Of a stretch of DNA of 64,000 nucleotides, positions 1-14,001 are shown piece by piece. The DNA is from Oopsacas minuta (lineage: Eukaryota; Animalia; Porifera), in the NCBI GenBank assembly GCA_024704765.1, contig JAKMXF010000300.1, positions 62,001-126,000 of the forward strand, in the 5' to 3' direction. The notes beneath the pieces are model-generated. The model was not told the origin of the DNA, did not search any database, and saw nothing but the letters and a program-made list of their open reading frames with translations. Made by a program: the position numbers and the translations under genes. Each line of letters starts with the position of its first letter. Positions within the stretch are counted from its first letter, which is position 1.

Positions 1-3000
1 GTTTTGAACAAATTCATTTGCCCTCTCTTGAATCTCAAGTTTATTGATACAGTGAAGATTAGAAAAATAAATTCTTATCTGGATGCTATTGCCATTTCCC
101 AAATCCGTTCTCCAAAAATAATTATTAGTTGTATCTCTCACTCGAAGGACATTACTGCTTCAGTAACTAGCAAAGAAGTTGACAAATTACTTCAAATTAT
201 AAATCAAGTTGATGTGAATTCACTTACCCAAGATGAAATTACTGTGCTGACTTGTCTCAAAGTCTTTCAGACTCAATCAGGAGAGTATTGTTCTTTGTCT
301 GATTGCGATCAATGCTTCATAAATAACTTCAACTTAGATTTAGGTACTGTACTACTACAAACACTTTTACAAAAGTATAGATTAGTCATTTTCTCTTCAA
401 ATAATTCAAGCTTAATTCAATCTTTGGGTAGAAGAGCTAAGATACAAATTTTAGACGTGTCTCACTTGCTCTCAGGGATGATATTCCCTCATCTCGCTGA
501 AATACCGGTTGAGGAACAGAAGAAAATTATTATTTTCATATCACATAATCTAGATGGCCGAATGAACTTATCAAACTTAATTAGAACTTTGGCTAAAATT
601 GCTTTTGTGTTAAGCGATGACGGGCGAAAATTTAGATTCAATCAGTTCTATTCTCCCGAAATGACATTCTTTACAAAATTCCATTCTCACACTACTCTAC
701 CTTTGTTATGGAGAGATGGTGGCATTAGACATCTCATTATAAAGCTGGGACTACGGACTGAAATTTCACTTCAAGATATACATGACGTAATACTAATGTT
801 TTCTCAAAAAATATTCCCAAGTTCAGATCTACCTGAACTATTTGATGCATTTCGACCTATCCTACAAGCTAACAAAGAATTAGACTTGACAACTCTTCAC
901 AATATTGCTAATATTCAATTTCTCCCTGTCTGGAGAATAGAATGTATTACAGCAGCTAATGAAAAAACATATTCTGAAAATTTAGTTAGATTCTGTGATG
1001 CTCAGCTAAGACAGTTTCAAAACTGTTGTTGTACAACAGCCTGGATCCACAAATTCGACTTTAATTTCCCAACAGAATACTACCAACATCTTCGCATTGG
1101 AGAATATCCAGATCCTGCTACAGTGAGGGATCATTTAATCAAAATCACCAATCAAATAATACAGGTCTATTCTCTTTTAAATATACCAACTTGTTATGAA
1201 AAATATTTCCGGAAATCTTACGAGCTTCTAGAAATGAAGTTTCCAGCTGAAATATCTTATGAAGGACTTTTCAATTTACCTTGCATTCTATGGGACAATA
1301 AACTGTACTACCCAATCAATATGTTAATTAGTTCAAATGAGATTCTATCTCCGTTTGTCATACAACTGCCTGCAAAACTCGCAGGAGACTATTTGAATTT
1401 TTTCAAACGAATCAAGGTCAGTGAGAGAGCTACATACAAACATTTTGCGCTTGTTCTATTAGAAATATCAGAGCACTTACGTTTATCCGATATTGAATTG
1501 AGTGAGAGTGATTTCTTACAACAATCTGAAAAAGTTTTCAACAGCTTCATATCTGCATTAAGAGAATTACAGATAAATCAAATATCTTTTTGCCTTGACT
1601 TGAATCAAACCATGCTTTTAACAAGAGACAGTAAGCTTGTTTCGAGCATCAACGTGGTATTTGCAGACAATCTTTCCCTACTTTCAAGGGTGATAAAACT
1701 AGATATAAATATAAATATTTTGAAACCATTAGAGCCTGATGAAAATAAATCATGTGTACCTCCAAGTTGTCTTAATTTGAACAATCTAACTGAACTTGTG
1801 TCTGAACAAATACATCCTAATGTATTGAATAATAATACAATTTCTCTAGGAACTTATTCTTCTCAACAACTACAAAAGACTTTGAAATGTCAGGTTGTAT
1901 TTCGTTCAATGCGTAGATTATACTTCCATTTGACGAAGAAAGATTTAGAAAAATTGTTGCTATTGAATGGAGAAACTTGTTTCAATGATGATGGCCTCTC
2001 CCATCCTGGTTTCCAGTCTATCTCATTTATTCTAAATAGTTTAATAGTAGTGTCTGTGACACAAATCGATACTATCATTAATGACAACCGTCAAAATCCT
2101 CCTGTACAATACCCTCTGGATAACTCATGTAGCTGTTACATTAATAAATCTAATAATCAATTTCTACTATCAAATCATAACTCTAAATCAAAATGTATGC
2201 AAAAAGACATAGCTTATTCTATCAATACTCATCTTGGTGGTATTTTTACAGATGTACTTTCATATTTTGAGCTCTGCTTCATGTTGGATCCTTATGATAT
2301 AATGGACAAGTTAGATGAATATAATATCAGTAGAGACCCTTGGGCAATACCCCCACCACCTCCTCCACCTGTTCCCATACCATCAGGTACAGTTTATAGC
2401 ACGCCTAGTTCTCATTATGTAGCTTCTACACCCTCTTACTCTTACTCCTATTCAGCCCCTAGGTACAGACCCAAACCGCGAGGGATTTCAATCGGGAAGC
2501 CTGATCTTCCTGCTGCTAGACTATGGCTTTTGATAGCACAATGTGATATTATGGCTGCAAAGAAACTAATTAGACAAACACCACCAGATAATGTTAATGC
2601 ATTTCCCTCACATGCTTGTTTCTTCTGTTTTGAAGCTGTAATAAAGATATTCACAGCTCTGTTACACTACAAGGGATCCAAAGATAGACTTAATTCTGAG
2701 CGAAATTTAAGATTTCATATTGATCATATTCCTTACCTTATACCAGGACAACCTCAAATGTATACGACAATTGAAGAGTTGACAATTCCTCTAATGAACT
2801 ATGATATAGACACTCGCATTCCTAGTGCTACAATTGGTTGCTATATTCCTCAGCAGACAATTACATTAGAACAAGCTATAGAGGCTATACAGAATGCTGA
2901 AGAAATTATTAATCTTATAACAAACGAGTTACCTGTTATGAAAGAAATGATGCTTGATCAGAACGATCCTATTTTCCGGTGTCTGACCTCTAATCAGCCT

Positions 3001-3087
3001 CATCTAATTACCGAAGTCCTCAATTGTAAGTTATTACAGTCAACTCTCTTCATATCGAATACACTCTGTAATAAAATGTTTAGCTAA
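1..3087 (+). CDS. Sacsin-like protein, 3' part (open at window edge), with C-terminal HEPN domain; possibly spliced at 3025 onto the downstream PARP exon
   Basis: Reading frame is open from position 1. The body has sacsin-like motifs (LLTRDSKLVSSINVVFAD). The C-terminus ARLWLLIAQCDIMAAK...ACFFCFEAVIKIFTAL...YDIDTRIP...AIEAIQNAEEII aligns with the sacsin-type HEPN helices. A Pro/Ser/Tyr linker precedes the HEPN. Confidence 0.85.
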   Translation, partial: VLNKFICPLLNLKFIDTVKIRKINSYLDAIAISQIRSPKIIISCISHSKDITASVTSKEVDKLLQIINQVDVNSLTQDEITVLTCLKVFQTQSGEYCSLSDCDQCFINNFNLDLGTVLLQTLLQKYRLVIFSSNNSSLIQSLGRRAKIQILDVSHLLSGMIFPHLAEIPVEEQKKIIIFISHNLDGRMNLSNLIRTLAKIAFVLSDDGRKFRFNQFYSPEMTFFTKFHSHTTLPLLWRDGGIRHLIIKLGLRTEISLQDIHDVILMFSQKIFPSSDLPELFDAFRPILQANKELDLTTLHNIANIQFLPVWRIECITAANEKTYSENLVRFCDAQLRQFQNCCCTTAWIHKFDFNFPTEYYQHLRIGEYPDPATVRDHLIKITNQIIQVYSLLNIPTCYEKYFRKSYELLEMKFPAEISYEGLFNLPCILWDNKLYYPINMLISSNEILSPFVIQLPAKLAGDYLNFFKRIKVSERATYKHFALVLLEISEHLRLSDIELSESDFLQQSEKVFNSFISALRELQINQISFCLDLNQTMLLTRDSKLVSSINVVFADNLSLLSRVIKLDININILKPLEPDENKSCVPPSCLNLNNLTELVSEQIHPNVLNNNTISLGTYSSQQLQKTLKCQVVFRSMRRLYFHLTKKDLEKLLLLNGETCFNDDGLSHPGFQSISFILNSLIVVSVTQIDTIINDNRQNPPVQYPLDNSCSCYINKSNNQFLLSNHNSKSKCMQKDIAYSINTHLGGIFTDVLSYFELCFMLDPYDIMDKLDEYNISRDPWAIPPPPPPPVPIPSGTVYSTPSSHYVASTPSYSYSYSAPRYRPKPRGISIGKPDLPAARLWLLIAQCDIMAAKKLIRQTPPDNVNAFPSHACFFCFEAVIKIFTALLHYKGSKDRLNSERNLRFHIDHIPYLIPGQPQMYTTIEELTIPLMNYDIDTRIPSATIGCYIPQQTITLEQAIEAIQNAEEIINLITNELPVMKEMMLDQNDPIFRCLTSNQPHLITEVLNCKLLQSTLFISNTLCNKMFS

Positions 3088-3455
3088 AATGGTAAAATAC
3101 CATCACTGATTTATTTATCTAATTTAACGTGGAGCATTTGGCTTCGGTGTAACGAGAATTGACTGCGTGTATTGTATAATTGATAGAATGGTAAGTTGCT
3201 CTGGTATTCAGAATCAGGCTTTTTGTCTAATTACGTACACTAAACGATATGAAGTTTTACATTTATTTTGCAAATTATAAAGAGATTAAAATCGTAGAAA
3301 CGTTTCTTTTGTTCAAAGTGTCTTTACCAAGACACTTTGACACATGTTATTTTTCAATATTCGTACATTTGGTGATAATTACTAAGTAAATTGACTTTCA
3401 TCTTTTTTTTTGTATGTATATTGGCAATTCTAAATTTAATTCTTAACTCCAATAG

Positions 3456-4030
3456 TTGACGTGGGAACATTAATGTGTCAGGTTTTGCTCAATCCAGAAG
3501 ATGAAGAGTTTAAAAATATTTCTCGCTGTTTCCATAACTCAATGCCTTACAGTGAGGTTATATTTATCAAGAAAATCTTCAATCCAACCAGCTGGGAAGC
3601 ATTTAAAGCAAACTTTATCCGTGAAACTAATAAAAACCCAGACAGCTGTATCTCCATTCGTACTCTCTTCCACGGATCAAGCGACACAAACCCTGAACTC
3701 ATAATTAACGATCCAGAAGGTTTTAATATGCAGTATGCACAAAGAGGTCTTTGGGGTTGTGGCATTTACTTTGCAACAAACTGTTCTTATTCGCATACGT
3801 ATCGTTATGATTTGGGAGATGGTTTGTGTAGCGTGTTTGTAGCAACAGTATTCATTGGCTATGCAAAAGAGATGACTAGAGATAGGAATATTACATGTCC
3901 ACCCATACGCCCCAATAGCTCAGAGAGGTATCATAGTGTACAGGGGAGATTGGGAGGTGAGGTCATCCATATTGTCTATAAAAACTGTATGGCTTACCCA
4001 TCATATATTATTACATATAGGAAAAATTAG
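3456..4030 (+). CDS. PARP-type ADP-ribosyltransferase catalytic domain, H-Y-I (mono-ART) type; either the terminal exon of the sacsin-like gene or a stand-alone ORF from ATG 3473
   Basis: Motifs LFHGS, GCGIYFA, VFVATVFIG, YHSVQG and IHIVYKNCMAYPSYIITY. The catalytic-Glu position is Ile. An acceptor-like CTTAACTCCAATAG ends at 3455. Confidence 0.85.
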
Positions 4031-4464: not shown

Positions 4465-6105
4465 ATGGCTAAATTACATGATACACAAGAGTATACAGAT
4501 TTAGACAATCCATTTGGAGATGATAATCTCACTACTCCGTTTGTGTGGGCGAAGAAGAGAGAAGCGACTGAAAAGAAGATCAACAAACGACTGTCTAAAC
4601 GTGAACACACTCATCGCGACACTGAGAGTCAGAGACTGAATAGAGAAGAACTGTTACGTGTCAAAAAGCGCAGAAAAGAACGCGAAATTGAACTAAAAGA
4701 GAGAGAAGAGGATAGGAACAGAGAACAACGTAAGAAAGAAACGGAACATTTTAGAATTTGGGAGAAACAAGAAGATGAGTTTCACTTGAATCAGGTCAAA
4801 ACACGTTCAGATATACGCCTAAGTTCCAACAGAGCTAAACCAATAGACAAACTAGCTAACTACATTAATCTGTCATCATCTGATAATGTTAATGAATTAC
4901 AGATAGAAGATCCATGTAAAATATTGTGTGGGGTGTGTGTAGGGGATCTTGAAGATTTGATAGAAGATATTAAAGTTTATGTCAGAATGGAGGAAGGTAC
5001 GAATCTACATTTTTGGCAGGATATATCTATAATAGCAGAGGAAGAAGTGACGTCACTGAAACGATTAGAGAATAACTCGAACAGTAGAGCTGTAATAAAC
5101 GCTCAATTGTCACCAGAAGTTGCTAGCTTGTTTAAAGATAAATCTCATTCTGAATTAGCTTCTTTGTACGTACAGATTGAATCTAGTCTAAACAAACAGG
5201 AATTGGATGGGAGAGCTTATTGGGAAACAGTGTTAAGACAACTCAGATCTCATATGGCGAGATTAAGACTGAAGGAAAGACACCAGGAAATGTTGAACAG
5301 AAAATTAATTTCATTGAAAGCAGAAAATTCTGTGAATAAGACTGAGTCAGAATTATCATGTGATAAGGACGTGAGTAAAACAACAAGGGATATTACAGTA
5401 CATACTTCTAGTAATGCAATGTCTGAACAATGTACTGATATTTCTGGTATTAGCAATGAAGATTCTAGTTTCTACTTATACGAACAGGGTCGTTATTCTC
5501 CTAACCTTCTCTCTCTATCTGAAGTATCTGATGAACAGGTTATCAGTAGTACACAAGCAGATACAGGATTGTTAATTGCTCAGTCACGTGTCATGCGTGG
5601 AGAGCTAGCTGATGATAAGTTATGTAGCTCCGAATCAGATGAGAAAATGGTCAGTCGAGCTGAACAGAGCGATTTCACAGAAGGAGAAGACTTCACGACT
5701 GAAGTACGAATTGAACAACAATATCTTTGGATGGATAAGTATAAACCTAGAAAACCACGTTACTTCAATAGAGTACACACTGGGTTTGAATGGAATAAAT
5801 ATAATCAAACTCATTATGATCATGATAATCCACCTCCTAAGATTGTACAAGGCTACAAGTTCAATATATTCTACCCTGATTTAATTAATAAGACTAAAAC
5901 ACCGGAATATTTCCTCGAACCTTGTAAAGACAGTAAAGAATTTGTCATTCTACGTTTCCGTGCAGGTCCACCTTATGAAGATATAGCTTTCAAGGTTGTG
6001 AACAGAGAATGGGAGTATTCGTATAAACACGGGTTCAGGTCTCAGTTTAATTGTAACATATTCCAACTTTGGTTTCACTACAAAAGGAACAGATATAGAA
6101 AATGA
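4465..6105 (+). CDS. CACTIN: Cactin (spliceosome C complex subunit)
   Basis: DNPFGDDNLTTPFVWAKK, the coiled-coil mid domain, and the C-terminal KPRKPRYFNRVHTGFEWNKYNQTHYDHDNPPPKIVQGYKFNIFYPDL...AGPPYEDIAF signature. Confidence 0.97.
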   Translation: MAKLHDTQEYTDLDNPFGDDNLTTPFVWAKKREATEKKINKRLSKREHTHRDTESQRLNREELLRVKKRRKEREIELKEREEDRNREQRKKETEHFRIWEKQEDEFHLNQVKTRSDIRLSSNRAKPIDKLANYINLSSSDNVNELQIEDPCKILCGVCVGDLEDLIEDIKVYVRMEEGTNLHFWQDISIIAEEEVTSLKRLENNSNSRAVINAQLSPEVASLFKDKSHSELASLYVQIESSLNKQELDGRAYWETVLRQLRSHMARLRLKERHQEMLNRKLISLKAENSVNKTESELSCDKDVSKTTRDITVHTSSNAMSEQCTDISGISNEDSSFYLYEQGRYSPNLLSLSEVSDEQVISSTQADTGLLIAQSRVMRGELADDKLCSSESDEKMVSRAEQSDFTEGEDFTTEVRIEQQYLWMDKYKPRKPRYFNRVHTGFEWNKYNQTHYDHDNPPPKIVQGYKFNIFYPDLINKTKTPEYFLEPCKDSKEFVILRFRAGPPYEDIAFKVVNREWEYSYKHGFRSQFNCNIFQLWFHYKRNRYRK

Positions 6106-6434: not shown

Positions 6435-7568
6435 ATGCAATTAGCAAACCAATTGATTAATTCGGCTATTCCCAATCCATTAACCCATATATCAGCTGAT
6501 TACGAGAGTGGACATATATTCAACAATTATCTACGTGGTTGTAAATGGTCTCCAGACGGTACTTGCCTACTCACATCAAGTAATGACAAGTGTATGCGTA
6601 TTTTCGAGCTAGATTTAATCCTTGATTCGAGTTTTGATTCTACCTCCTCTTCAGCTGCTCTGGTGCTGTATGAGCCGGAGATAGTATATGATTATGCATG
6701 GTACCCTGCTATGTGTTCTGAAGCTCCATTGACTTGTTGCTTGGTTACAACGTCTAGAGACTGTCCAGTTCATCTATGGGATGCTTACACAGGGTCTGTT
6801 AGGTGTTCTTACCTACCTTATGATCATGTACAGGAATTACATGCTCCATACTCTGTGTGTTTCTCTGCTGATGGTGATTATATTATTTGTGGTATGAAGC
6901 ATTACCTTAAAGTATTCCACACAGCTATCCCTGGTTCATATTCTACTAATATTCAACTGGTTTTGGGTAAGAAACATATTCCTAACAATATTGTTTCCAC
7001 AGTCACCACACGTGGAAGCGCTATTTTGTTCGGCTCATTTGGGGGGAATGTAGGTTTGGTTGGGGAGACAGGAAAAATAGAGTTACTGCTAGAAGCACAT
7101 ACACAAGGAGTTACACATATTGATGTAACAGCTGATGGAAATTATGTTGTAGCTGGAGGGAGAAAGAATAACAATATTTTTATTTGGGATCTGCGAAATA
7201 CAACACAGTTTGTAGCTAAATTGAATAGAATATCACTAACAAGTCAAAAGATATATTTCGATATTGACAAATCTAATTCTATAGTGTCTGGGAACCAGGA
7301 TGGTAATATTAGTGTTTGGAGCGAATATACGTGGAAATCTCATAGGGAAAATTTGAATGGAATTTCTCCGGATTCTCAAATACTTGCGCATAAAGATTCT
7401 GTGAATGGAATAAGTGTGCATCCGAGTAGAGGCTTGATAGCTAGTGCTTCTGGTGAGAGGAAATTTTGGGTTGATTTTGACTTGGAGTATGGAGAAGATG
7501 AAGAAATGTCAACTGTTTCTTCAGAGAATTGTATTAAAATTTGGAATAATTTCAATAGATTTATATGA
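6435..7568 (+). CDS. WRAP53: Telomerase Cajal body protein 1 (WD40 repeat)
   Basis: YLRGCKWSPDGTCLLTSS, IVYDYAWYP, SRDCPVHLWDAYTG and AHKDSVNGISVHP...IASASGER match WRAP53/TCAB1. Confidence 0.92.
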   Translation: MQLANQLINSAIPNPLTHISADYESGHIFNNYLRGCKWSPDGTCLLTSSNDKCMRIFELDLILDSSFDSTSSSAALVLYEPEIVYDYAWYPAMCSEAPLTCCLVTTSRDCPVHLWDAYTGSVRCSYLPYDHVQELHAPYSVCFSADGDYIICGMKHYLKVFHTAIPGSYSTNIQLVLGKKHIPNNIVSTVTTRGSAILFGSFGGNVGLVGETGKIELLLEAHTQGVTHIDVTADGNYVVAGGRKNNNIFIWDLRNTTQFVAKLNRISLTSQKIYFDIDKSNSIVSGNQDGNISVWSEYTWKSHRENLNGISPDSQILAHKDSVNGISVHPSRGLIASASGERKFWVDFDLEYGEDEEMSTVSSENCIKIWNNFNRFI

Positions 7569-8403: not shown

Positions 8404-11400
8404 TACTTGAGCACATTATCTGACTAAGTAAGAATCTTAGAATGATAGAATAGAGTGTATAAGCCCTCCATTGCGATATCATACATTTGAATAATTATTA
8501 CGTTTGGTGAGCACATTCACTTTTCGTATAAATGTGAATTCCAATATTAATTATACAAACATATGCCTTATTCAGGGAATTAATGTCCCATGGAATAACC
8601 CCGAAGAAATTTGACTCACTAACATTAACAGGAAATGGGGCAGAGCATTTTTGAATACACAAAATTAACGCGATTATTATTCGAATAATTCAATTTTTCC
8701 AAAACCTTCCCAAAATGCTAGGCTTCCAATCTACTATATGGTATCCTCTCAATTCAGTTGTACATCGGGAATAGCTTGAAGTTCTGAATATCAATCGGGT
8801 GACTATGTAGGAAATAAAACCGCGAAATAAAAAGTGGTCGAATACTTCATGGAAATAAACGCGAAATGTTAAATTTCGTTAATTTGTAATTAAGTAATGA
8901 ATTGGGAACAGAAGTGCAGAAATTAGTGTTTCAAGTCTTTGCTCCAGCTAATATTTTAAGAATATGTCTACCACTGCAAATTCATTGCACATTTATGAGT
9001 ATTTAATTGATCTTAACAGACGGTAAATTCACATAATTGAATCTTATTGTCAGCTACTGAACCAATCAAGTATTAATTATTATATAAAACTGTCCACATT
9101 CTCTAGATTTTATAACTCTACACTCAATTATGGCGAAATATTTCATAATAACTATATTCATTCGCTTATTACTAATACAATACTACAATAGTGTATTTAT
9201 GAAATTATAATTGTCTGTATAAAACTGATCATATGCTCGACCACTTGGTAGACTCATTAATCTTAACTTCACTTCCTGATGACAGCGCTGATATAACACC
9301 CACTTCAATTCTCGATACAGCAAATCATAGCACGAAAATTTGTTGTAATATTATTTATGTGAATAATAATTATCTTGCGTTTTTTCTGATAAATATTCAA
9401 AACAAATCGAGAGTGTACGCTTTATCATGCTAAACTCACTGAATGTCTATTATTTCATATCATTTAGATTTTTTATGATTATGCATCCACAAGGATATGC
9501 GAATTTTTATTTCAGGAAAATTAGTAAGATTGGTAAAATGGTTTATCAATTTTTCCTGAATCGATATTTTCTTCTTTTTTGGGATTGTTTTTGCTTAATC
9601 CTTCGAAAAATATGATAGTTTAATTTTTAATAATCGCGATATTCTGCAGAGATTCGACAAGTAACACTAGTCTCTTTATTCAATTCGTTTTCAAATGTTT
9701 CCAGGATTCCCGCTGAGTTTTGTGATAATAATGTTAACTGTAATTACAAGATTATGTAGAACTGGGCTGAAACATTTCCCAAATTAATATACTTCTCGTT
9801 ACGTAGGATTATTTTGATATATTCACTGTTCAACTACCTGAGATGTTATTGTAACCTAGCTACAGTTGAGCATTACTTTGATTTACCAGAACTCCTTTGA
9901 ATGGTTGTGTTCATGTGATGTGAGCCTTTGAATTATGAAGCAATTTCTTATCATCCTAACTGTAATGTATAATATTTGTTTTAGTAGAAATTGCTAATGT
10001 ATATTGATATTATGTTTAAAACACGCCTATTAGACTAATACAAAGAGATTCTTGCTAATCCTGAACACACAAATCATTGAGTTATACTCACTCTAGAGCA
10101 GATTGTGCGTAGATATATACAACAGTATATGACACTTATGATGAGTTAATATAATAGAAAGGAAGTTAGCTGATAGAATGTCATAACTACATTATTAACA
10201 ATAATGATGTGGTTATGACATGTCTTTGAACTATTGGTAGATTTGATTAAATTTGCGGATAATTACTACAAATTGCTTATATCTAGAAAGCTACAACTCT
10301 GCTTTGTTCTAATTGTGATCCAAATACACAATTATTGCAGAAAATCATTTTCATTAAAGTTTTCCTACATTGATCTTTATTGATTTATGATTTGCTTAGA
10401 ACAAATTTCTGAGACTCTTTATAACTAGAAATATCATCTTTATCTATTAATTTAATTTGAAGATGAAAACAAAAAGTATTTGAGAATTGATTACTTTTGT
10501 TCTTTTGAGAAATTTGTAGGAAAAGAAGAATCAGGAATAATATGTACAAACTTTGAAGACAACTAAATTTCACATTATTAAGATTTCAGTTTTTCCGGAT
10601 TTGTTTTGTCGTAGGAGTTTTAAGAGAACCTTTTGGGTTTTGAATTGATGTGAGTTATTTGGAAATTACATAATAGAGAATGTCATGGTGCATATTACCA
10701 GTATTTAATTCAAATTAATACACAATTATTTCTATAATAACACTAAATTTATTCTTGTTAAACTGTATTACTTCTTTAGAATTTAGTTACTGAAATATCT
10801 TCTGTTTCCCCCTTGGTTAGAGTAGACTAAATTCGTTGTATTACGTTTGGGGTTTATTTGTACTATTGTTAATGTATAATGCTTGCAATTGCCATTACAA
10901 GAAAGTAATTAAATCCAAATAATATAATAATTGAAAATATGTTGTAACTAATGATAAACTCTATCATACTTATGTTGATAACATATATCTCTAAACCATT
11001 ATATAAACTGTATTTCCTTCCAAGCAATGTGTTCACAAATATGAATTATCACACTTTCCTTTATGGATATTTTATAGTATAAATGACTTCAGTATTCTCA
11101 AGTAATACTGCTAATAGAACTGAACTCCCCGGATATATGAAGTAAACTCGTATATTCATTAAAGACTGCCCTTTGGTTACACATAGTGCATGTGTGATAT
11201 ATATGTATATTTAATCAAATCTCCAAATATTGATAAAAATTATCCCTACAAAATTACTATAAGGATGTCAACCGGAGTGCCGCATACGCCTCTAATGCAG
11301 CATTACAAGTAAATCTATAATTCTTATTATTATTCTTGTTACCTGCTAAAGTAATACTATTCAAGAATTTTATAATATCCTATTGGTAATATATTTCATA

Positions 11401-11670
11401 TTAGGACATTTCTAATACTTATAGTATTTTGATTACCCTGGTTACCAAATACATCATTTGAATGTATCAGGAATGAGCAGATTACAAACTCAGTAAATTC
11501 TAATTTTCACCGGAAATACAAATAGACTATTACGCGATACATAAATGTAAACTGTCTATGTGTTTTTATAGCATACGTTTTACAAGAAACACCTGTTATA
11601 TAAATATGATATATATTATTAAATTTCAACCTTCAGCTGTTGTGTTTTCCAAATCGTAATATTTAAGTGA

Positions 11671-12156
11671 AACACTAAATTTCCTTGTAAACATATTTGT
11701 TATATTGAAATTTTTAATATACAATTCGAAAGTGATGAAGCTCAAATTGAAACAGATAATGCCTAGAGGATACACAATTTTTTAAACGAAATATCAACAA
11801 ATATCCTAGTCTGCGAAAAACCTGTTTCAAGAAAATGCGAATTTCGTTATGATTATTGTCAGCATATATTTCCAACTACAAACATTATTTGTGTTGAAAT
11901 ATACCACGATGTTGTTTGTATTGATAAATTAAGGATTCAAAGTTTTGAAGAGATGACTTTTTCTGTTAATAACAGTTCATAAGTATTATTGAATCAATCA
12001 AATACTGAGACAATTGTGGTTAGAATTGAAGCAATCAATTCTATGAATGATACAAACATTAAAAGAATTATTATAATCGGCACTCTAACTTCCACTTTGA
12101 AATATGTTAATGTAATCTTAAGAAAAGTAATTAAGTCTAGCGAGATTTTGAAATGA
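11671..12156 (+). pseudogene. Decayed ORF of unknown family (162 codons, two internal stops)
   Basis: Frame reads IEIFNIQFESDEAQIETDNA*RIHNFLNEISTNILVCEKP...SFEEMTFSVNNSS*VLLNQSNTETIVVRIEAINSMND...SSEILK*. The only internal stops are TAG 11764 and TAA 11980, far fewer than expected in ~30% GC DNA. Confidence 0.5.
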
Positions 12157-14001
12157 TTTCAATTCTATTAACAACCTCTCTCTCTCTTCAATTAATATAG
12201 TCAAATTGAATAAAGGGCTATGATAGTGACTTAAAGCTTTTAAATTACAGAGTTTATTATAGTACTATAGTGGGTTAGTGGACTAATGGGAAAGGATAGC
12301 AGGATCAGGACATCTGTAGTTTAATGGTTCTGATAATATTGTGGACATTTAAGAATGCGTATTTTAATTATTCAATGTCGTGCACATAAGATTCATGAAT
12401 AATATATGATTATACGATTACAAAATTGGACCACAAATGTTCTATAATATATTTTCTAAAGTGCTTTTCTGGAGTTCAGTTCTTAGTAACTTAAATTCTT
12501 ATTCGAAAATACTCATTGAAATAATCCTAGAAATATCCTTCAATTATCTGTATAACTCACCTCCATAAAGTGTCTTGCCCAGCCTACACCAGTACTTTGT
12601 ATATTATTTACCCTCTAACGATCTACAGAAGATCTAGTATTTCGTGACTGAGTTCAGTACCATTTCGTTATGAAATTAGTAACAAAATATTCTCCTATAC
12701 AGATAAGCACAATCCAATGACTGTACGTACATAGTTCGTCATTACTATTTCAGGTTCTCGCTACTGATGAATAGAACACAGACTCCTATAAAGAATCTAG
12801 ATGGAATACGATATATGCGAATTATACATTTGCTTGGTATTTATCAGCTGATAAATTCAATTAGTAGTAAGAATGAATATCTGTACAATAACAGGGCAAC
12901 CTATACCGTTATCGTAATCCAGTTTCACTTCTTTAAATGAGCTAAAAACTGTCAATAATTAATATTACAGTATATTCAACAAGCATACAATTTGGCTAAT
13001 CTCATTACCTTGTGAACTTATTTATTTATTTATTTCTCCAACGTCAATTGCTGGTTACAAAATTTCCAGCTTTCCATACATGTATTCATTTACTGTACAT
13101 ATTTCTGCCCGATTAGATACGAAATATTATTCACTGAATATATTCATTAGAAACGTTAATTTTAATGAAATTCCTGATTGCGTCACATAATAAATATGGG
13201 AAATAAAGTAATTAATAGACTCTCTCCATTAATTGAATTGTTTCAAACCACATTAGTGTAAGTATGTGATTTATTAATCAGGTGATTCTGGAATAATTCA
13301 AACTGATGGAATAATTATGTGGGTTAATTAGTTACTTAGAATGTACTTATTTATCAATTTTCTGTTTAGGAGAGAAATGACTGTCGGAATGCCTCAACAT
13401 TGCCCTGGCCCCACCCTAATGGAAATACTAGAATTTTCTTCAGTAGAAAATAGAAATAAATAGTTTTGGATTGATTCATAGGAAGAATACAATTCGATTG
13501 AGAGAAGGCAGATATGTCTGAATTCATCCGGATTTCCGCTTTTTTATGAAAACTGTCATAGGTGTTACAATTTAAGCTTAGTGAAAATTTGCTAAAAATA
13601 TAATTACACCTTAGAAAAACCGTACTTCGCAAAATGGTGTATGATTTTTTGTGACTTTGAGCACTTGAGTACGATTTTTTACCTAACACAACATGACACA
13701 TTTTTTGCCATTTGTGCCACTTCCAATATTATATCCATTAGATTCACATTTCACAACAATAACGGTTCAAGAATTGTTTAACCTCGACATTTTTCACTGC
13801 TTGCAATGTTGTTTCATTCAGAATTATTTGCATTGATATCTTGCAATTACATCCTAGTTTAAAGGAGATTATTTTAAATTTTCCTTCAAATCCTAATTTC
13901 CTCTTACTTAGCCATTATGTGTAATTTGACGCTATCTAAGAGTAAGAAATACATGAACTTCAAATTCCAGTTGTATCATAGAGGTTGTAATAGAGTCTAG
14001 T

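Follow-up and report, generated by a model that had tools for sequence, protein, structure and literature searches.

Sacsin is a giant protein that combines three SACS/Hsp90-like repeat regions with a HEPN domain. Invertebrate sacsin-like proteins, those of Amphimedon among them, are fused to Death or TRADD-N domains and have been interpreted as proteins of conflict or apoptosis (PMC3710099; PMC8195603). We analyzed a 64,000-nucleotide stretch of the genome of the glass sponge Oopsacas minuta (contig JAKMXF010000300.1, positions 62,001 to 126,000 of the forward strand), referred to here as the window. Positions 1-4030 of the window are, with good confidence, the 3' end of a single gene, which encodes a sacsin-like protein of about 4350 residues. 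The protein would carry three repeat regions of the sacsin type (Hsp90-like ATPase) and a long conserved body; a linker rich in Pro, Ser, and Tyr would then lead to a sacsin-type HEPN domain, and a PARP14/15-like catalytic domain would form the C-terminus. HEPN and PARP would be joined through a conserved phase-1 intron at 3026-3455. This reading includes a proposed mechanism in which the PARP domain would act as a mono-ADP-ribosyltransferase (mono-ART) and the HEPN domain would not act as an RNase.

Comparison with described systems

The resemblance to sacsin extends over the whole protein. Besides the three repeat regions and a homologous HEPN domain, full-length relatives of the window protein align to named sacsins at ~24-26% identity, with E values down to 1e-160. 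The HEPN domains of the window and of human sacsin both lack the His of the Rx4-6H motif, which is the catalytic residue (PMC3710099). Several features set the locus apart. Unlike vertebrate sacsin, neither the stored protein encoded by the window (P0007) nor the part of the sacsin-like exon inside the window (exon 1) gave a match to DnaJ (PF00226) or UbL (PF00240) at E<=0.1. In the window gene the HEPN domain is not C-terminal; the exon beyond the next intron encodes a PARP catalytic domain. The family to which the window gene belongs is also multi-copy, with some copies in tandem.

The Death and TRADD-N fusions provide a second point of comparison. Like them, the window gene is a lineage-specific sacsin paralog bearing an added signaling or effector domain. 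The added domain in those proteins is an adaptor, and Death is N-terminal, whereas the window gene carries a predicted enzyme, a mono-ART, at its C-terminus.

The third comparison is to the mono-ARTs of the PARP14/15/12/10 class. The catalytic domain in the window aligns end to end with those of PARP14, PARP15, and PARP12, and the family shares with this class an H-Y-(I/V) triad in place of H-Y-E. In contrast to these proteins, the window gene lacks macro, WWE, CCCH, and RRM domains, and the N-terminal partner of its catalytic domain is a sacsin-like ATPase plus HEPN. A search of P0007 for macro and WWE domains, which are features of macro-PARPs, returned no matches.

Structure of the sacsin-HEPN-PARP gene

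We compared the window with P0007 and with five related loci (L001-L005) from four ENA assemblies, which were reached via the proteins P0001, P0002, P0012, P0003, and P0031. The gene has the following features in the window, where ORF denotes an open reading frame and AF2 an AlphaFold2 model.

1-3025, + strand: 3' portion of the giant penultimate exon of the sacsin-like gene, including the first base of a split Phe codon; open in frame 1 and corresponding to P0007 residues 3171-4155
2387-2455, + strand: 69-nt in-frame GT...AG segment in the Pro/Ser/Tyr-rich linker, absent from P0007 (a 23-aa gap relative to the window ORF)
2518-2919, + strand: sacsin-type HEPN core, a four-helix bundle, recognized by hhalign, an AF2 fold match, and sub-threshold Pfam matches
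2815-2832, + strand: degenerate Rx4H motif R-I-P-S-A-T, with the Arg (2815-2817) kept and a Thr (2830-2832) at the position of the catalytic His
3026-3455, + strand: phase-1 GT-AG intron of 430 nt with donor GTAAGT and acceptor tract CTTAACTCCAATAG; same junction in P0007, and position and phase kept in L001-L005
3456-4030, + strand: last exon, encoding a complete PARP catalytic domain (3458-4027) and the stop codon, recognized by Pfam, a PDB search, and a nine-copy alignment

The start of the gene lies upstream of the window, and frame 1 is open from base 1 through a stop at 3085-3087. P0007 is 4346 aa long and carries three Pfam SACS matches and a PARP match. Exon 1 is identical to P0007 residues 3171-4155 save for one skip of 23 aa. 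The three SACS stretches of P0007 (E 4.9e-187) are all upstream of the part encoded in the window, and relatives of P0007 also carry HATPase_c_3. The sacsin-like body with upstream ATPase repeats that a sequence-only reading of the window had proposed is present in the stored protein. We searched the two exons separately; their joined form is seen in the stored proteins P0007, P0028, and P0001.

The window ORF runs open through the 23-aa, Ser/Thr/Tyr-rich segment at 2387-2455, ahead of HEPN. A comparable boundary, TCAG followed by GTACA, occurs at ~15563 in L003. Either a mini-intron or an artefact of annotation may explain the segment.

A conserved phase-1 intron joins the HEPN and PARP exons

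At the donor, GTAAGT (3026-3031) comes directly after T3025, which opens a codon. Two other phase-1 GTs (3068 and 3077) precede the stop that begins at 3085, and both are non-consensus. At the other end, the acceptor tract CTTAACTCCAATAG closes with AATAG, whose final base is 3455. A TAA precedes the point, 3440, from which the frame of exon 2 is open. Since the stretch from there to the conserved DVG contains no AG other than 3454-3455, the acceptor is effectively unique. Exon 2 then begins with TT (3456-3457) followed by GAC GTG GGA, and its frame runs on to the stop codon at 4028-4030. With T and TT brought together, a Phe codon arises and the spliced product reads ...HLITEVLN-F-DVGTLMCQ. 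P0007 carries the exact junction ...EVLN-F-DVG....

The same arrangement recurs in the related loci. T followed by GTAAGT directly behind the HEPN tail, AG followed by T(T/C) ahead of the PARP exon, phase 1, and a split Phe codon are found in six loci, namely the window and L001-L005. Intron length varies widely among them:

window, 430 nt
L001, 93 nt
L002, 112 nt
L003, 360 nt
L004, 93 nt
L005, ~2700 nt

Identities to the window (HEPN/PARP) across the five loci are 65/65, 62/75, 46/53, 43/50, and 33/39%, so that the two parts drop broadly in step. All copies also appear to conserve the residues CK after VLN, which is explained by translation of the GTAAG of the donor. The shared donor, phase, and split Phe in the compared sequences of five related loci are far beyond chance.

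The 430-base segment does not align with the intron of L003, whereas the PARP exons of these two loci are 75% identical at the DNA level. Its GC content is 28%, and an Rfam scan of the intron and its flanks gave no match. The mean intron size in the Oopsacas genome is 341 bp, and the annotation of that genome consists of Braker/Augustus models with RNA sequencing hints (PMC10280926). By every test short of RNA, the intron is confirmed as real. The sequence-only reading had placed the donor GTAAGT at 3026 and the end of the acceptor at 3455, both in phase 1, and had written out the spliced peptide. Both predictions agree with our reading of the sequence and with P0007, and the splice sites and their phase recur in the five related loci.

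HEPN and PARP fall in a single ORF in L001 and in the proteins P0017 and P0018 because the 93-nt intron is open in frame. L001 contains two sacsin-like genes in tandem, at 10001-13954 and from 16548 onward, and ORF callers read straight through the 93-nt intron of the first. L005 (16229-18922) is a distant paralog with 33% identity in the HEPN region; its donor and phase-1 acceptor are kept ~2.7 kb apart, which is long for such a genome. The architecture also exists at another Oopsacas locus. P0028, an NCBI model from Oopsacas minuta named 'Sacsin-like' (2722 residues), shows the same spliced sacsin-HEPN-intron-PARP order, and its UniRef name is poly [ADP-ribose] polymerase.

The HEPN domain is sacsin-type and lacks the catalytic histidine

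Sequence searches with the HEPN region gave faint signals. Pfam HEPN matches appeared in 9/17 family members, below the cut-off (E 0.0019-0.05). A phmmer search of the PDB with the HEPN sequence returned nothing relevant, and a family-profile search of the PDB gave only a match to the HEPN protein 1wol at E 0.65. When the 17-member family alignment was compared by hhalign with one of 14 canonical sacsin HEPN domains, the two matched with 98.4% probability and an E value of 8.5e-15. An AF2 model of the domain had a mean confidence (predicted local distance difference test, pLDDT) of 80. Foldseek found 3o10, the human sacsin HEPN domain, as its best PDB match, followed by other HEPN-T structures. 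The hhalign and fold matches establish that the HEPN domain is truly sacsin-type.

The position of the Rx4-6H His is occupied by T, S, or V in 17/17 family members, and the alignment places the motif at TRIPSAT. Nematostella and Amphimedon sacsin-like proteins have RYPxxH at the matching position. Because the catalytic His is missing across the family, the domain is unlikely to work as an RNase effector, and we conclude from the alignment that it is probably not one. This corrects the sequence-only reading, which had named HEPN among the common effector domains of conflict systems.

We considered RNLRFH as an alternative active-site motif and rejected it, because it falls within the insert that separates helices 2 and 3, its His varies in the family (H, L, Y, or F), and the alignment puts the true motif at TRIPSAT. 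The string itself, ERNLRFH (2701-2721), has the form R-N-x3-H and resembles a HEPN motif; nearly every family member keeps the Arg and the Asn. Helix 2 ends in a nearly invariant His, in the context LLH(F/Y).

The last exon encodes a predicted mono-ART

Exon 2 encodes 190 aa and matches Pfam PF00644 at 7e-14, with 52 bits against a cut-off of 26.7. Its residues 6-189 align to 9-193 of the PARP14 crystal construct in a PDB search (E 9.5e-16); PARP15, PARP12, tankyrases, and PARP10 follow. The triad is H-Y-I, formed by His 3671-3673, Tyr 3767-3769, and Ile 3965-3967. The Ile, which is Val in L005, stands opposite a Leu of PARP14. As our sequence criterion for a mono-ART, an enzyme that transfers single ADP-ribose units, we used a third triad residue that is not Glu (H-Y-I/L/V). 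From the triad and the affinity to PARP14/15/12/10, we infer that the domain is a predicted mono-ADP-ribosyltransferase.

The exon is well preserved across the family. All 9/9 aligned copies are intact, and LFHGS, G(I/L)YFA, and SY(S/A)H are invariant. The ratio of nonsynonymous to synonymous substitution rates (dN/dS) is 0.04-0.15, with dS saturated. The window and L003 differ by a dN of 0.17 at saturated dS, and dN/dS between the window and L001 is 0.15. The PARP exon is under purifying selection, and the intron, which does not align between the window and L003, is not.

The exon does not bring its own start. Near the beginning of exon 2 a single ATG, at 3473, is in frame, and it is conserved in 0/8 relatives. 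Residues ahead of it (DVG...QV.L..) are conserved as protein. The first Met in closer relatives comes 29 residues in, past the first beta strand and helix aligned to PARP14, and is absent in L005. On this alignment, the PARP exon is without a conserved start codon of its own. The suggestion that the ART domain lacks an N-terminus thus stands as far as the start codon is concerned, but not for the fold, which the PARP14 alignment covers as a complete unit.

Alternative explanations for the HEPN-PARP arrangement

The arrangement could also reflect two adjacent genes, with the sacsin-like gene ending at the 3085-3087 stop and a stand-alone PARP protein of 185 aa starting at ATG 3473. Each ORF is open independently, ORF-based callers on related assemblies report the PARP piece as a separate ORF, and an AATAAA lies at 3070-3075, inside the intron and directly ahead of the stop. 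Nevertheless, we regard two genes as very improbable. A start at 3473 would be conserved in none of the relatives, yet the residues before it are conserved as protein, and the CK that seems to extend the HEPN ORF is merely translated donor sequence. Splice phase agrees in six loci despite their differing intron lengths. Both parts share one open frame in L001, P0017, and P0018, and spliced models exist in P0007 and P0028. The same AATAAA bears on a second explanation, one that is compatible with the fusion: intron retention or intronic polyadenylation might additionally yield a sacsin-HEPN protein that has a tail of 21 residues and no PARP domain, the ART domain being added conditionally. A retained intron would reach a stop 20 codons past the donor, and the 93-nt intron is open in frame in some paralogs. 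Against this, the loci do not conserve the tail that the intron would encode, the intron frames hold stops in L002, L003, and L004, and an AATAAA is expected by chance because the intron is AT-rich. Two isoforms therefore seem to us an unlikely addition to the fusion, with a somewhat better claim than two genes. Even less probable than two genes is a PARP exon without function, either as a relic in decay or as a captured pseudo-exon. Nothing specific speaks for such a relic, apart from the absence of the catalytic Glu, as in some inactive PARPs. Active mono-ARTs such as PARP10, however, have the H-Y-I triad, and the nine intact copies, the invariant motifs, and the low dN/dS all run counter to decay.

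A single gene with a spliced fusion remains our preferred explanation, and several points weigh against it. The case for the junction is comparative, and P0007 is an automatic gene model. The AATAAA could permit a PARP-less isoform. The AF2 model of the PARP domain reached a pLDDT of only 54, too poor for a fold search. Finally, enzyme activity, HEPN dimerization, and an immune role are properties that we infer. In favor of one gene that joins a sacsin-like body, HEPN, and an H-Y-I PARP-type domain, as the sequence-only reading had supposed, are P0007, the intron shared by six loci, the lack of a conserved PARP start, and the homology to sacsin HEPN.

Neighboring genes and distribution of the fusion

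Two genes follow the sacsin-PARP gene in the window:

4465-6105, same strand: single-exon cactin gene (Cactin_mid and CactinC), 3' of the sacsin-PARP gene
6435-7568, same strand: single-exon gene for a WD40 propeller, after cactin

L003 is a syntenic ortholog of the window locus, since cactin and the WD40 gene follow it in the same order. L002 and L004 share a different neighbor, and the fusion is therefore older than these duplications. A tblastn search found no further paralogs within the window.

We surveyed sacsin-like proteins for the combined sacsin, HEPN, and PARP architecture, a search that had been proposed along with the fusion. Among the 120 listed of 184 sacsin-like proteins, only P0007, P0017, P0018, and P0028 carry PF00644. 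Other sponge sacsin-like proteins, from Amphimedon and Dysidea, have Death or HEPN domains instead. In an exhaustive HMMER search, for which a natural ORF fragment spanning HEPN and PARP served as query, matches with both parts were confined to this sacsin-HEPN-PARP family. The other top PARP matches were at most 45% identical, except for a few short pieces with PARP alone that reached 75%, and none of them had the size of a sacsin.

We found no description of a sacsin-PARP or sacsin-ART fusion in the searchable literature, and the Oopsacas genome paper makes no mention of sacsin or PARP (PMC10280926). The junction is already in public glass-sponge gene models, and the gene structure is not new. 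Because the public model holds the junction, the practical gain for annotation is small.

Proposed mechanism and significance

By analogy to human sacsin, the probably non-catalytic HEPN domain may serve as a dimerizing or nucleotide-binding module. Dimerization of HEPN would bring two ART domains together at the end of a chaperone-like scaffold driven by ATP. The sacsin scaffold would select clients or sense a trigger, and the ART domains would then mark the clients, or the protein itself, with ADP-ribose. A stress or immune role is plausible by comparison with related systems, since the family is multi-copy with some tandem copies and fusions to Death and TRADD-N have been published.

A broader version of this model is tentative, and we consider it rather doubtful. 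It holds that glass sponges possess a multi-copy family, some of it in tandem, of giant sacsin sensors powered by ATP, whose HEPN-dimerized ART pair would carry out mono-ADP-ribosylation. The family would be an animal counterpart of prokaryotic conflict systems that couple an ATPase sensor to an effector, and it would act in antiviral or anti-symbiont immunity, not in housekeeping proteostasis.

Sacsin is a human disease gene, and the part played by its HEPN domain and the logic behind its giant ATPase scaffold are not yet clear. The fusion described here adds an enzymatic effector to the known invertebrate sacsin-like adaptor fusions with Death and TRADD-N. As a conserved natural fusion of scaffold and predicted mono-ART, it offers a testable hint that the sacsin scaffold may present clients to an enzyme.

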